Below are positions 2,762-34,700 of a DNA stretch of 64,000 bases, one piece after another (the stretch's first letter is position 1; each line of letters starts with the position of its first letter). The translations under genes and the position numbers were made by a program. Source of the DNA: Paramoeba atlantica (taxonomy: Eukaryota; Protista; Discosea); NCBI GenBank assembly GCA_977017575.1, contig CDRNVI010000069.1:62001-126000 (forward strand), given 5' to 3'. Under the pieces are notes generated by a model, which saw only the letters and a program-made list of their open reading frames with translations, did no database searches and was not told the origin of the DNA.

Positions 2762-4255
2762 TTAAAAAAAGTCAAAATCACCAATAAGTACGGTGGCAAC
2801 AAAAAACCACACATACCAGTGGTTCCGGTAAGAGTTCGCTATGCGCTCATGAAATAAATATCTCTGATGCTCGCTGCAATAGTTGTAGAGATAAAAATCA
2901 ACAGGAATGCAAAGTTCTCGCTTATCTTTGTCAATACGATACGAAGAACCGGGCGCTGTCAAACGAACGGTATGGCCTTTCAAGTAGGCCCGAAAAAGCC
3001 ATGCGGTGCGCAGAAACGCATCGCAACAAGATTGAAGCTGACTGGGGGTAATGTAATAATTCTTTTCCGTTTGTTTTTGTCCAGTTACTGAAACACCCGC
3101 AGCCGCAGGTAGAGCACTTGGCTCTACCCGTAGAGACGCGTCATGTTCATTAAAATGAAACCCGGAAAGGGTGCATCGAAAGCGCACCGCTTCCACTGCC
3201 TCATGGAGACGTTCCTGTTCCTCCTGAACCGTGACCTGCAGATGCATCAGAGGGGAAGCCTCTGTGCGTAAAAAGTGCAACACCTCATAGGGCGTCGCGG
3301 TGTCTAGAAAACGAACCTCCGCTCGGGCCCAATCAATCGTATAGGGCAATGTTCTAGCAATTGCCCCCAGATTTCGGGTTGAGCGTTTTGTTTTTTGAGT
3401 TTCAGAACTCAAAGGTTTGCTCTTTTCCTCCTCTGTGGGAGTCCTTGATAAAATAGGGCTCTTGTTTGTTGTTTCCTGCGTGGGCTCTTGCAACGCCCAG
3501 GCCGTGTATTGCCCTCTTGTAAAATTACGGTAGTCCGAGGTCTCTTCCTGGTGATCGTTCACGAGGGTTCGTTTCGCCACGTTTGGCAGCTCTTGCAGCA
3601 CCCCCTGCCGTACGGGATCAGGGACCACCGAAAGGGACAAGTGGGAGAATGCGGGGACTTTTTCAAACAGCGCACGAGAGGCAAGAAGTCGCGCAGAGAA
3701 CCCCGCAAAGTCAGCCGATTTATCCCATGTTACACGTTTCCATTTCATTTGGTTGCGCAGGGGCTGGGAGCCGTAATATTGGGTTAGGCCATCGTCGGCG
3801 TCCTCAGGAGAAGGTGGTACAGTTTCCGTCGTTTTCGCAGTGCTTCTTTGTAAATTCGCGCTTTGAGAATCCGTAGGGGTGCTAATTTCTGTGACTGAGG
3901 CACATCCTGGTGCATTCGTTGCATTCTGCCCGTTTGTGATTGGTTTCGTTTTGTCACCGCTTTCTGTTGTGCCCACAGAAAGGGGCGATGTAGGGGGAGA
4001 TGTATTTTTAAACGAAGTGCATGCCCACTGCCATGCGGTCTTTGTGTAGTGAACAAATCCCTTTTCATCTTTTTGACGTTCATGAAGGACATGATTCATG
4101 ATTTCCCTTTGGGTTTTCATCCAAATTAGAACATCACTGGGACGAGTCGTATTTTGAAGAGGTAACGCCACACACCCCATGACAGTAGCGCGACGCATCA
4201 TCAGTGTAATATTCAACAAAAATAATTTTTGAAGAAGAGAATTTTTCTTTTGCAA
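2762..4255 (-). CDS. Hypothetical protein (497 aa; start may be MMRRATVMG)
   Basis: Long intronless ORF co-oriented with the gene cluster; no family recognised. Confidence 0.7.
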   Translation of the reverse strand: MQKKNSLLQKLFLLNITLMMRRATVMGCVALPLQNTTRPSDVLIWMKTQREIMNHVLHERQKDEKGFVHYTKTAWQWACTSFKNTSPPTSPLSVGTTESGDKTKPITNGQNATNAPGCASVTEISTPTDSQSANLQRSTAKTTETVPPSPEDADDGLTQYYGSQPLRNQMKWKRVTWDKSADFAGFSARLLASRALFEKVPAFSHLSLSVVPDPVRQGVLQELPNVAKRTLVNDHQEETSDYRNFTRGQYTAWALQEPTQETTNKSPILSRTPTEEEKSKPLSSETQKTKRSTRNLGAIARTLPYTIDWARAEVRFLDTATPYEVLHFLRTEASPLMHLQVTVQEEQERLHEAVEAVRFRCTLSGFHFNEHDASLRVEPSALPAAAGVSVTGQKQTEKNYYITPSQLQSCCDAFLRTAWLFRAYLKGHTVRLTAPGSSYRIDKDKRELCIPVDFYLYNYCSEHQRYLFHERIANSYRNHWYVWFFVATVLIGDFDFF

Positions 4256-8553: not shown

Positions 8554-9411
8554 CTAGTGAAGCAGGTGTATTTTAGTGCGACTACAGAACTCTTGGTCAG
8601 TGAAACAGTGGCGCAATGCAGGACTGTGTGTTGAGAGATCTATCATTCCGCTAAGATCTCTATTTCCATCCAAAGTCAACCAAATCACCGTTCCGGGAAG
8701 CCTTTTAAAATCGACTTCGCCTTCGAAGAAATTGTTCTTAAGATAAATGCGTCTCAAATTGCTTTTGATATCCCCGAACTGAGGGGTTCCAGAGAGTTCA
8801 TTGTGGGAAACATCGAGAAACCTCAAAGACGCGGGTAATAAACCGAAATTCAATTCTCCCGTAAAACAGTTGTCGTCGACTGAAATAACCTGCATGAAAA
8901 CTGGAAGATTCTTTATTGATCCAGTAAATTTATTGCTCGAAAGCCGCAGTGTCTCGAGCTTTGGGGGAAACAGTTCAAACTCTACTAATCCACAAAGCTC
9001 ATGACGACTAAGGTCCAATATAAGGACGGACTTTGGAAGATGTTCCCAGAAAAAGGTCCCTTGCAGATTGCATCCTTTCCAATCAATTGCCCCTACTTCT
9101 CCCTCTTCATTGCACCACACACCATGCCACTCGCACGCAGGGGTGTTCGTGTTCCAAGTGGGGTTCAAATTCTTTATTCCTCGAACAAAGAGGTCCAATT
9201 TATATTCCTGAGGTAATTCAGTGCCTTGTATCTTCCCTAGGCGAGTACTCGGAACATCGGCTGTGCATATACCCGAGCATTGTGTATGCAACGTCCAAAA
9301 TATGACACTAGTCATATTAAAATTTAGAAAAAGAAACCTGACTAAAGTCTTGATCCAAATGCGTTTCGAGATATATTTCTTAGAAATGGGGGAACTAATT
9401 CTGGGGGACAA
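8554..9411 (-). CDS. Small LRR protein, plant-specific-type 24-aa repeats with LRRNT_2-like cap
   Basis: RLGKIQGTELPQEYKL..W..TPACEWHGVWC followed by LxxLxLxxNxFxGxLxxxxLP repeats. Confidence 0.9.
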   Translation of the reverse strand: MSPRISSPISKKYISKRIWIKTLVRFLFLNFNMTSVIFWTLHTQCSGICTADVPSTRLGKIQGTELPQEYKLDLFVRGIKNLNPTWNTNTPACEWHGVWCNEEGEVGAIDWKGCNLQGTFFWEHLPKSVLILDLSRHELCGLVEFELFPPKLETLRLSSNKFTGSIKNLPVFMQVISVDDNCFTGELNFGLLPASLRFLDVSHNELSGTPQFGDIKSNLRRIYLKNNFFEGEVDFKRLPGTVIWLTLDGNRDLSGMIDLSTHSPALRHCFTDQEFCSRTKIHLLH

Positions 9412-9474
9412 TCAAATTTGTGAAACTCAGTCAACGTTGTCAAATTATAAAAAATGCTGTATTCCCCCGTTAAG

Positions 9475-9896
9475 AAGAAGAAGAAGGTTCGGATGGCTCT
9501 GCAGCGCCAACTGTTAGGGTAGAGTCCCAGGTCACCGACCTTCATTGTCTTGCTACCCCATTCCCAGGCGGCACTCGACCCCTTGCGGCCCGAGAACGGC
9601 TACCCAACCGTAGCTACCAGGACGGGTGTCCGCTCCGTTGCATCGTGTAGGTTGTGTCTCAGGCCTCCTTTGCGCAATCAGCTCGCAATTTAGCGGCTGC
9701 GCTGGAGCCTGGTTCAGCTCGACGGTTCCGGGTCGGTCCTCCAGGGGAGCGGGGTTGGGTGTGGGCATTGAAGGCACTCCTGATCGCTTTCCCTTTGTAG
9801 TGAGGCCGCCAGGTTGCGAGTTTTGCCGATAGCGGGAATCGAACCAACAACCTGCAGGTTGTAAGGCCCACCGTCTGCCAACTATGCCCGAACCAC
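9475..9896 (-). mobile_element. tRNA-derived SINE-like retroposon
   Basis: tRNA-like head, GC-rich structured body, (CTT)n tail, and a perfect 13-bp direct repeat TTCCCCCGTTAAG at 9462-9474 and 9897-9909. Confidence 0.8.
9835..9889 (-). promoter_or_regulatory. Pol III internal promoter (box A / box B) in the tRNA-like head
   Basis: Minus strand GGGCATAGTTGG (box A-like, 9878-9889) and GGTTCGATTCC (canonical box B, 9835-9845). Confidence 0.65.
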
Positions 9897-9900
9897 TTCC

Positions 9901-9946
9901 CCCGTTAAGCGCACTTCGTCTTTTCGTAAAAAGCGCGCTTAACGGG
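9901..9946. repeat. 12-bp perfect inverted repeat
   Basis: CCCGTTAAGCGC ... GCGCTTAACGGG; the left arm overlaps the SINE target site. Confidence 0.8.
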
Positions 9947-10151
9947 AGGGGTCTGAATCACTAGAGATACGAAGGCTATGCAGCGGAAAAACGTCGATGG
10001 CGACACTTCCGGGAAAGTCTGGAAATTTTGTTTCTTGCTTTAGAAACATCCCAGAACAGTTGCAAAACTTTAATAACAGAAAAGAAGGATTTTGTTTAAA
10101 AAGCGGCACTTTCCTCAATATTTTTCTTTATCCCCCTATTTACTATTATTA

Positions 10152-10397: not shown

Positions 10398-11189
10398 TTA
10401 TTCCGGCACTCTCTTCCACCCGCGGTCGAGTTCAGAATACTCAAAACAGTTGGATAGTTTAGTTTTCCATGCATTAGGTTCCAATCTTATAATTTCAAGA
10501 CTTTGGGGAGGATTCCTCAAATCCGCAACGCCCGAAAATTTATTTTGACCCATCTCCAAAAACCAAAGTCCTTCGTGTAGAAAAGAGAAATCAACCTCAC
10601 CACTCAGCTCATTACGGCTAATATCAATTTGCACAAGAGAGCGTGGCAGAGCGCTCAAATTCACTGTCCCCGTAAATCGATTTGAACCAAGCAGCAAGGA
10701 AACCATTCCGTGGGGTAAGTGGGTCAAAACCAGAGGACCCATAAATGAATTCCGTCGCACCTCCAATTCCTTTAGCGTTGCCGGTAGCGCGTCAAGTTCA
10801 AGTCTTCCCGACACATAATTGCTGTAGCCGTCGAACACAGCAAGGCCGAGAGGCAGCAATGAGGTGTCAAGAGTTCCAGTAATCGCATTAGTCGAGAAAC
10901 GCATCTGCACTGTGTTTACAGGCAAATATTCCCACTTCAAAAAACCCTGCAATAAACATGGATTAGAACTGCGATTGGAATACAAGGTATCCCAATGAAT
11001 ACTTAGAGTTTTTAGGTCTCGTTCACAGCTCACGCCTTCCCATTGACATCCAGGTGTGGACGACGTCCATGATTCGTGTGGATTCTCGATACCGGAGATC
11101 AAACGTGTAAGTTGAATTTCTAATGGTAACACTGAACGGCAGATTTTACCTCTATGAACGAGATCTGTCATAAAAGATATTTTGTGCAT
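10398..11189 (-). CDS. Small plant-specific-type LRR protein
   Basis: HRGKICRSVLP..W..STPGCQWEGVSC plus about 6 24-aa LRRs. Confidence 0.9.
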   Translation of the reverse strand: MHKISFMTDLVHRGKICRSVLPLEIQLTRLISGIENPHESWTSSTPGCQWEGVSCERDLKTLSIHWDTLYSNRSSNPCLLQGFLKWEYLPVNTVQMRFSTNAITGTLDTSLLPLGLAVFDGYSNYVSGRLELDALPATLKELEVRRNSFMGPLVLTHLPHGMVSLLLGSNRFTGTVNLSALPRSLVQIDISRNELSGEVDFSFLHEGLWFLEMGQNKFSGVADLRNPPQSLEIIRLEPNAWKTKLSNCFEYSELDRGWKRVPE

Positions 11190-27118: not shown

Positions 27119-28677
27119 CAGGGGGGTAAATCAGATGCTGCGGGGGGTCTAAAAATTGCAAAACCTTTCCAATTTTGGAAAATGATAGCGTATTCGAGAG
27201 CTCTCGAAGAGTTCTATGTTTTAGAAAAGGCAGCTTCCCGGGGTATAGGGGGGTGTTCAACTGACAAGAAGCCCAAAAACGTCAAAACACAAAAATTGTG
27301 AGAAAGGTTTTAGACGACTAATAATTACAACTTTCTCCTTTTTTTTCTACTACTATGTCGAAACGCCGCTGCATGCTGTTTAAAGTGTTAATGAGCATGT
27401 CATGACCATCTGTTTTAATGTAATCAACCGCTCTTTCAATAGAAAACAAGAGTTCAGTCCTATTTTCTGGATTTGTACCATTTTTAATAAAGGCATCCAT
27501 AATTTCCTAAATGTTTTCAATGGGGTTAAGATCTGGGGATTTTGGGGGAAAGTCCAAAACAACGACTTCGTTTTCTTTAAAGGTTCTAAAACTGCCATTG
27601 TGGCAAGGAGCATTATCCATAGCAACCCGGGACCCGCTATGACGCTTTAAGAAACTTAAAAAAACCCCTCTTTTTGTCATCGCGCATTTAAAAACATCTG
27701 AAGTGATGGTAATTTTCCCATTACTGTCCCTGTTTGGAAAAACATGATAAAAAATTCCATAAATAAAGCTTATACCCATCCAAACGTTCACTCCATCCCC
27801 CCCAAACCACTTTTGCGAAGCTTTTAGAGGTGGTTTCGGGGGGTCACTTGCTCTGCAAATGTAAGAACGGCTTTCGCGCCCAAGTTGACAAGTAAACTTT
27901 TTTTCGTCACACCAAATAATGTGACGAAGCTGTGCGACAGACCACTTCTGCATTTTCAATGCAAAGGTTAGTCGCTTGGCCTTATGAGATTCAGTTAAAA
28001 AAAGGCCTTTCGAAAAAGAACGTTGGATTATCCCGGCGTCCTTCAAAAAATTTACTACAGTTGGCCTGCTGCAGGTGAAACCTCGTTTCCTGACCTCTCG
28101 AAGTATAAAATTCCAGGAGGGACAACCGCGTGTGCTTGACGTGTTGGCCGTGTCAATAATCTCGTGGCACGCATCAAGAAGCCCGGGTGTCGCCACAGTG
28201 CGTTCGCGAGGGGGTGTGGAACGTTCAACGTCCCCGGTTTCCTCAAAGCGTTTCACCCACAACTTGACAGTGCTGTGGTGGACGCCTTCTCTTCGGCAAG
28301 TGGCACTATAGGAATTTGTATTCTCGTAATCTTTTACAAGAAGCATCCTATGTGAATATTTGGTGTGCCCAGGGGAGGAGTACGCCCTATCGGAGAGAGA
28401 TCCTTTGTTCTGCATAGAACGGGATCGCTTTCGCGGCATAAAACTGAGACGAAATGGAGAAAAAACGAAAAAATGAGCAAATTTGGGAAAAACTGCAAAT
28501 TTTAGAGGGGCAAAAAAACTTAAAAAAAATGCCATAAACAAAATTGCTTTCTTTTGGGGTGAAAATAGCGCAAAAACATAGAACTCTGCGAGAGCTCTCG
28601 AATGCGCTATCATTTTCCAAAATTTGAAGGGTTTTGCAATTTTTAGACCCCCCCGCAGCATCTGATTTACCCCCCTG
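27119..28677 (-). mobile_element. Full-length Tc1-like element, DD32E
   Basis: About 100-bp TIRs starting CAGGGGGGTAAATCAGATGCTGCGGGGGGTCTAAAAATTGCAAAACC; TA on both flanks. Confidence 0.95.
27318..28439 (-). pseudogene. Tc1-like transposase with one nonsense codon
   Basis: MPRKRSR.. HTH region, WCDEKKF, MDNAPCH, PPKSPDLNPIENI; TAG at 27507-27509 where Trp is expected; the frame continues to ..KGESCNY*. Confidence 0.9.
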
Positions 28678-33599: not shown

Positions 33600-34700
33600 T
33601 CTTTGGCGCAGAGATAATCCTCTTAATGCGACGGCCGATATCATCGGCACATAATCCGCCCACAACGGATGTCGCCAAAGGGGGTTCGACACGGACTCGG
33701 TCGGTAGAGGGGGTCCAGGCAACTCGCCCTCTCTTTACGCAGCCGGAGGGGCGTACTGCAACCGACTCGGTCCCAGTCGGTAGAGGTGGTCCAGGCAACT
33801 CACCACCTCTTTACGCAGCCGGAGGGGCGCACTGCAACCGACCGCTGCCTCGCGATAATGCGAGGCAGAGTCACGCCCAGTGGTCCTCAAGGGAGGCCAC
33901 CATGGCGCATAGCTCCCGGGAAGAGACAGGCGCGAGAAGAAGAAAGCCGGGGAGGGAAGAAAACTCACTCAAGGAGTGAGCCGGGGAGGGGTGAAAAGTC
34001 GGAAGTACGTCCCCTACTTCCACGACAAAGAGGGACAGTCCCTGCTAGCCGTCAGCCGGAGACGGGCTTTTAAAAGGAAAATGTATGCCCGTTTCCGGGA
34101 AAAGAAAGGAAGGGCTAGCAAAATGTACCAACAAGGTACAGAAACTGTATCTAGATCTAGTTGACACGATCACTGGACGCATTGCCAAACCCAATTCTCC
34201 AGCTGAACAGCATGAGGGACGAGGCACCCGGCCCCGCCTAGCTAAACGAAAATATACCACATCTCTCAACAACACTCTCCCCTCCGACTCCACCGAACAG
34301 GAAACCATTATACCACGACAGAGGCATCTCAGCCAAGCAATATCGGAAAATGAATTCCAGGCTGCGTACATGAAAACAGACGCAAGGACGAGGGCACGAT
34401 GGGTTTCTCAATCAGGGCCGGAAACTGGGCTTTTGTAACACCGTCCAAGAGCAGAGGCTACGCTTTTACCCACACGGAGTTTCGGACTCTGACACGCTGG
34501 TGGCTCGGGATGAATATCTTGCCGGAGGATCAACCTTGCCCAGCTGACGGCTGCACCCTTCCCTTACTTAAAAATGGAGAGCACGCTTTGCTCTGTAAGA
34601 ATGGACACGGTATAATCTCACGACATAATGCCGTAGCGCAACAATTTACGTCCTTTTGCAGCAAAGCTTTCCTTCAACCACAGAGAGAGCTGCTATGACG
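33600..34700 (+). mobile_element. Internally deleted CRE-like retroelement (structured 5' region plus zinc-knuckle fragment)
   Basis: ARWVSQSG..FRTLTRWWLG..CPADGC..GEHALLCKNGHGIISRHNAV; the 5' region shares AGTGGTCCTCAAGGGAGGCCACC with 62250-62560. Confidence 0.75.

Follow-up and report, generated by a model that had tools for sequence, protein, structure and literature searches.

What kind of sequence is the 422-nt insert at 9475-9896 (minus strand) of the window, i.e. the whole analysed stretch of 64,000 nucleotides, and by which route did it arrive there? The insert is bounded by an exact 13-nt direct repeat, CTTAACGGGGGAA, with the upstream copy at 9897-9909 and the downstream copy at 9462-9474 (both, like all parts of the insert mentioned below, read on the minus strand), just as the initial annotation had proposed in marking a 13-bp target-site duplication (TSD) around 422 nt. 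That annotation took the insert for a tRNA-derived SINE with a structured body and a (CTT)n tail, and as a whole the observation is real in part. We consider it very probable that a short non-coding retroposon, namely one copy of a tRNA-related SINE, occupies 9475-9896 and was inserted via target-primed reverse transcription.

Read from its 5' end the insert comprises: a tRNA-related head (9822-9896; assigned by motif reading and by the Rfam score of a typical copy), a GC-rich body that is devoid of TTTT runs (9529-9821), a 3' terminal module (9487-9528) composed of GGGACTCTACCCTAAC.G, a hairpin and TCCG..., and, adjoining this module, the tail that had been claimed, which reads (CTT)4 (9475-9486). 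The G+C content of the element is 59.7% and the longest ATG-initiated frame within its 422 nt spans about 71 codons, which marks it as short and non-coding. The neighbouring ORFs (10398-11189 and 8554-9411) represent tandem paralogous LRR genes, both encoded on the minus strand, the strand that holds nearly all long ORFs of the window. The SINE sits in the spacer between them, in the same orientation as the genes, approximately 490 nt past the upstream stop codon; the downstream gene has its first ATG approximately 150 nt further on.

The insert belongs to a dispersed repeat family. Comparison with the 45.7-Mb assembly yielded 210 candidates at first look; scoring of 40 of them gave identities of 92-100%. 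A 27-nt head pattern was matched 154 times and a 27-nt tail pattern taken from the 3' module 107 times, with no matches for the reversed control patterns, and the summed word depth over the insert, a rough measure obtained from the contigs of three DNA runs, was some 35-200 times that of its flanks. The copies start within 3 bases of the position of the upstream repeat and finish in the tail (query 13-16 to 438); the 13-nt repeat of the window is placed exactly at these begin and end points and is thus more than a chance repeat. Many matches reside in tandem arrays that multiply one insertion or fragment (C40:961-999 kb and contigs C61, C71, C10, C12 and C105), and the number of independent insertions is therefore lower than the match counts, perhaps 50-100; about 15 distinct flanks were found among 30 loci. 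The genome-wide check that had been suggested for the insert thus shows a multi-copy, interspersed family whose independent copies have their own TSDs. The head-only arrays on C61, C71 and C105 were considered as a separate family and rejected, as they consist of ordinary copies or fragments. The arrays listed above (and L090) are long, and their units are assembled from pieces of transposable elements; that on C105 has a period of approximately 3.96 kb and at least 20 units, in which SINE bases 12-146 are interrupted by a second repeat family (see below) in reversed orientation.

Relative to the family majority, typical copies carry 6-15 differences over the 422 positions; the window copy has 25 and its twin on contig C34 has 26. 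Some of the changes in the window copy disrupt base pairs: a G-to-T change creates a mismatch in the T stem, and two others affect the terminal hairpin in its outer ACGG/CCGT stem. Given 25 differences in 422 positions, these mismatches included, the window copy is unlikely to have been a source of other copies. Several of its diagnostic bases recur in the 5' half of the copy at L088 (contig C82), which implies that subfamilies exist, among them a minor one, and judged by its bases the window copy looks like an older member or a member of such a minor subfamily. Taken alone the window is ordinary: it holds one decayed copy in an LRR spacer.

The marks of retroposition are found across the family. 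An exact flanking repeat of 7-14 nt accompanies 12 of the 16 independent insertions; of 240 mismatched flank pairs, 3 have a repeat that is at least 7 nt long. The TSDs vary in sequence and length between copies, the number of CTT units in the tails ranges from 3 to more than 10, and several 5' junctions bear 2-10 extra bases. When flanks were read by eye, five out of 14 duplications began with CTT or TTC, which fits the earlier idea of a micro-homology between the tail and CTT in the target. Some copies are truncated at the 5' end, like those at L085 (query 231-438) and L089 (query 174-420); the latter has 81% identity, which indicates that the family includes old members. An unusual junction was observed at L085, where the 5'-truncated SINE is flanked by an inverted duplication of the target of approximately 75 nt (3760-3836 and 4060-4140); it possibly reflects twin priming or an inversion.

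The target itself could be recognized. The insertion site falls within the last few bases of a hairpin of 65 nt (9899-9963), itself the terminus of a different dispersed repeat family for which a first look gave at least 78 genomic places. The upstream copy of the duplication corresponds to these last bases, which are present once and uninterrupted in the paralogues: four of them (L033-L036) run through ...GCGCTTAAACGGGGGGGACAG without an insert and act as paralogous empty sites. In these paralogues (around 1501-1570) a GC hairpin and a T9 run precede the 65-nt hairpin, and the window keeps only the last 65 nt. The only near-identical copy of the SINE is that at C34:125630-126077, where the flanks are 98.75% identical over 3.4 kb and the site is also filled; this twin represents the same locus, either as a haplotig or as a recent duplication. 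The search for an empty allele, which had also been suggested, yielded no orthologous one in the contigs of three DNA runs from one study; DNA contigs of runs X1 and X2 span both junctions, and none of the joints skips the insert.

The head of the element contains a box A-like sequence, GGCATAGTTGG (9878-9888), an anticodon-like arm (9854-9871) in which a 5-bp stem, GTGGG/CCTGC, closes an 8-nt loop, CCTTACAA (9859-9866), a perfect box B, GGTTCGATTCC (9835-9845), and a 3' acceptor-like strand, TATCGGCA, whose 5' partner is unpaired. The degenerate tRNA that had been read here therefore holds with respect to its motifs, i.e. the box B, the box A-like sequence, the 8-nt loop and the unpaired acceptor; the head of the window copy was called a tRNA by neither ARAGORN nor Rfam. 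A typical copy (L004:1513-1571) scored 22.3 bits with the Rfam tRNA model (E 0.033 with 4227 families), which does not reach the gathering score of 29. In this alignment the anticodon arm and the T arm are paired and the 3' acceptor strand is aligned as well. ARAGORN reported no tRNA anywhere in the window, and its calls at thresholds of 75-85% were inconsistent. Among the 24 distinct tRNAs that were compared, an incomplete set, the tRNA-Glu(CTC) of this genome is nearest to the T arm and the 3' acceptor strand. By sequence, then, the head of the typical copies is related to tRNA.

This relation bears on the first alternative to be weighed, which we consider improbable: that the family consists of short retroposons like RIME, NARTc, SIDER or SIRE, i.e. 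LINEs or VIPERs with an internal deletion that are transcribed by RNA polymerase II, and that the likeness to tRNA is accidental. Every short retroposon that has been described for the group is of this kind (PMC12278014), the head scores below the Rfam gathering score, and the genome holds a second family in which the 3' module of the SINE occurs without a tRNA head. Accidental likeness nevertheless has to account for a tRNA model that aligns the anticodon arm, the T arm and the 3' acceptor strand with an E-value of 0.033 after correction for 4227 families, and for a perfect box B at a tRNA-like spacing from the box A-like sequence. Moreover, all copies that were read end in (CTT)n instead of poly(A), and no LINE was found that matches the 5' part of the SINE.

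The second family is non-autonomous as well: it is approximately 325 nt long, contains an internal run of T9-10 and gave 486 first-look places, with copies at L083:8486-8810 and L084:3716-4035 and arrays on contigs C65 and C11. The SINE ends in the form ...CCCTAACGG-hairpin-TCCGTGT-(CTT)n, and some copies of the second family end in ...CCCTARCGG, a hairpin, TCCGTGT and (CTT)n, which is the same module; in other copies the hairpin is deleted. The two families differ in one stem pair, G-C versus A-T, with both of its bases exchanged. The 3' terminal module (9487-9528) probably serves the reverse transcriptase as its recognition site.

The LINEs of this genome that we read have 3' ends of a similar form. 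In one family (L071-L076; oriented 2907-3156) the 3' UTR contains a GCAA-tetraloop hairpin followed by (CAT)n, and in another (L085:2990-3063) such a hairpin is followed by (AGGAT)3; on the basis of these two families a hairpin plus a family-specific repeat appears to be the usual form of LINE end in this genome. The copies at L071-L076 are 99.8% identical, so that this LINE family must be very young. The initial annotation had asked for a LINE with the same 3' end as the SINE. No such partner was present in the approximately 300 kb of loci examined; an nhmmer profile of the 3' end found none when run against 13 LINE loci and the remaining loci, scanning the LINE loci for microsatellites revealed no LINE ending in (CTT)n, and comparison of the tail and second-family places with the best 150 of approximately 1850 reverse-transcriptase candidates recovered no LINE with the module nearby. 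An exclusion pattern for ...TCCGTGT(CTT)n gave three matches, of which one (C21:168176) overlaps a match of the SINE type, one (on C12) is an old truncated SINE and the third is located on C166. A candidate LINE end near C30:605445 was rejected because it is a 5'-truncated SINE.

The body was the part for which the initial annotation had claimed most structure: a folded stretch of approximately 250 nt with a closing helix and two hairpins. Both hairpins are indeed present within the body with the sequences given for them, the GCAA-tetraloop hairpin at 9574-9594 and the GCTAC/GTAGC hairpin at 9599-9614. The strands of the closing helix, CCTGGCGGC and GCCGCCTGG, are complementary at eight of nine positions and leave a T-T mismatch. 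The folding energy of the whole element was compared with that of dinucleotide shuffles and gave z-scores of -0.41 (minus strand) and -1.02 (plus strand); for its parts the values were -0.89 (the two hairpins), -0.88 (3' module) and +0.12 (head). Neither the element nor its parts fold better than the shuffles, and we have dropped the designation structured body, which as far as energy tells describes a property of GC-rich sequence. The body is conserved over its full length in an alignment of 26 distinct copies. The Rfam check that had been proposed for the body returned no matching family: at the gathering score there was no match in the whole window, and at E-values up to 10 the insert showed chance-level matches to miRNAs and snoRNAs only.

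These results weigh on a second alternative, in which the copies would be members of a functional structured ncRNA gene family (a tRNA-like part plus the body) that owes its dispersal to segmental duplication instead of retroposition. The good conservation of the body across copies and the many copies in tandem arrays (C40, C61, C71, C105, C10, C12) speak for it, but the arrays show the element as fragments interrupted by other repeats, the independent copies differ in their flanks, are accompanied by duplications of their own, vary in their tails and are in part truncated at the 5' end, and neither the shuffle-level folding nor the Rfam searches point to a structured RNA; we consider this alternative very improbable. 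Hardly credible at all is an origin as a MITE, a non-autonomous DNA transposon that would depend on one of the genome's hAT or Tc1-like transposases: a Tc1-like transposase ORF does occur in the window (27507-28661, minus strand; 384 aa with Tc1-type HTH and DDE_3 transposase domains), but no terminal inverted repeats were seen when both copy ends were read by eye, one end consists of a microsatellite tail whose length varies, the duplications measure 7-14 nt where a fixed length would be expected, and truncation is restricted to the 5' end.

We thus return to the tRNA-related SINE, a reading supported by the interspersed copies with their own TSDs, the varying tails, the 5' truncation, the uninterrupted paralogous targets and the tRNA-related head. 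The proposed course of events is as follows. A source copy would be transcribed from the A and B boxes of the tRNA-like head, probably by RNA polymerase III, and would present no internal T4 terminator to this polymerase. A TTTT run is absent from the whole element and a T6 run (9449-9454) lies 8 nt past the downstream duplication, which would be compatible with read-out by RNA polymerase III and proves nothing. The single candidate RNA run contained no contig that covers the stretch. The RNA may then be recognised by a reverse transcriptase, presumably one encoded by a LINE, via the 3' hairpin module and the (CUU)n tail, and give rise to a DNA copy at a nicked target through target-primed reverse transcription, where the tail would sometimes anneal to CTT or TTC in the target. 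In the case of the window the insertion hit the last bases of the 65-nt hairpin, and 13 nt of target were duplicated.

Elements of this general design are well known: tRNA-derived SINEs with a LINE-type 3' stem-loop and a short tandem tail include UnaSINE1 of eel, which is paired with UnaL2, and the SINEs of salmonids and tortoises that go with RSg-1 or CR1-type LINEs. With SINEs of the UnaSINE1 type the present family has in common: A and B boxes in a head related to tRNA, a unique body, a 3' hairpin adjoining a tandem tail, variable TSDs, 5' truncation, and several non-autonomous families able to use one 3' module. It differs in its 8-nt anticodon-like loop, its unpaired acceptor stem, its (CTT)n tail and its host, a protist with a spliced leader of the kinetoplastid type.

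The placement of the host relies in part on other repeats. Several elements in the examined loci (L018, L026, L077), and one on the minus strand of the window near 34147, begin with ...ATAAAGATACAGTTTCTGTACCTTGTTG and have different 5' cut-offs. This sequence agrees at 17 of 19 bases with the 3' part of what we take to be the canonical kinetoplastid spliced leader. A pattern for the canonical kinetoplastid spliced leader had no matches in the genome. The spliced-leader relics, the one-strand gene arrays and a tight tRNA cluster together support a kinetoplastid-type protist. With respect to tRNA genes we also observed a compact cluster of nine on contig C53 (L056), and identical genes (Lys-TTT, Thr-TGT, Lys-CTT and others) that recur at a spacing of tens of kb on contigs C137-C185 (L040-L069).

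Within this broad group of organisms, the short elements that have been named for trypanosomatids and Bodo saltans are RIME, NARTc, SIDER and SIRE, and the larger ones belong to the INGI, CRE, VIPER and TATE clades, with Merlin as an addition in Bodo (PMC12278014; PMC4728078; PMC8101967; PMC2323293). Like RIME, NARTc and SIDER (derived from ingi/L1Tc) and SIRE (related to VIPER), the SINE described here is short, non-coding, dispersed and reliant on an autonomous element, and those elements are often found in intergenic or UTR regions of polycistronic units. They are deletion derivatives of LINEs or VIPER that have a common 5' signature, 77-79 nt long in those derived from ingi/L1Tc, and a poly(A) end (PMC12278014; PMC2323293), whereas the present family combines a (CTT)n tail with a tRNA-like head. 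The SINE1-3 elements of Entamoeba are likewise protist SINEs with a few hundred copies, clustered with LINEs, with TSDs and putative promoter elements for RNA polymerase III (PMC2875222), and they resemble the present family in their protist host, the scale of their copy number, their TSDs and these putative promoter elements; they are not described as tRNA-headed (PMC2875222), differ at the 3' end and belong to an unrelated lineage. For the Diplonema genome only rRNA-fragment repeats are mentioned as SINE-like (PMC10161547). The initial annotation had stated that tRNA-headed SINEs are not described in kinetoplastids, and the papers searched, which come from outside the subscription journals, agree with this: we found no report of such an element, and the short retroposons that are named are all derived from LINEs or VIPER.

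The insert represents a well-known kind of element in a lineage where none appears to have been described. It is conceivable, though we would put this forward only tentatively, that it represents the first tRNA-headed SINE family of the RNA polymerase III type to be reported in a kinetoplastid-type protist, with a tag of 3' hairpin and (CTT)n that it has in common with a head-less family. The mobile elements of trypanosomatids comprise, according to the literature, four retrotransposon clades and their deletion derivatives (PMC12278014; PMC4728078; PMC8101967; PMC2323293), and the repertoire of this group would be extended by one class of mobile elements if a relative has a young SINE with a promoter of the RNA polymerase III type. 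If SINE-like elements in this genome also begin with the spliced leader, one LINE machinery would copy both RNA polymerase III transcripts and trans-spliced RNA polymerase II transcripts. The family would supply presence/absence markers for strains and would offer a natural test of how LINE enzymes choose their templates via 3' tags. Pyrimidine-rich tails would, if all this is true, be strewn through the spacers of the polycistronic arrays, where they could serve as trans-splicing signals.
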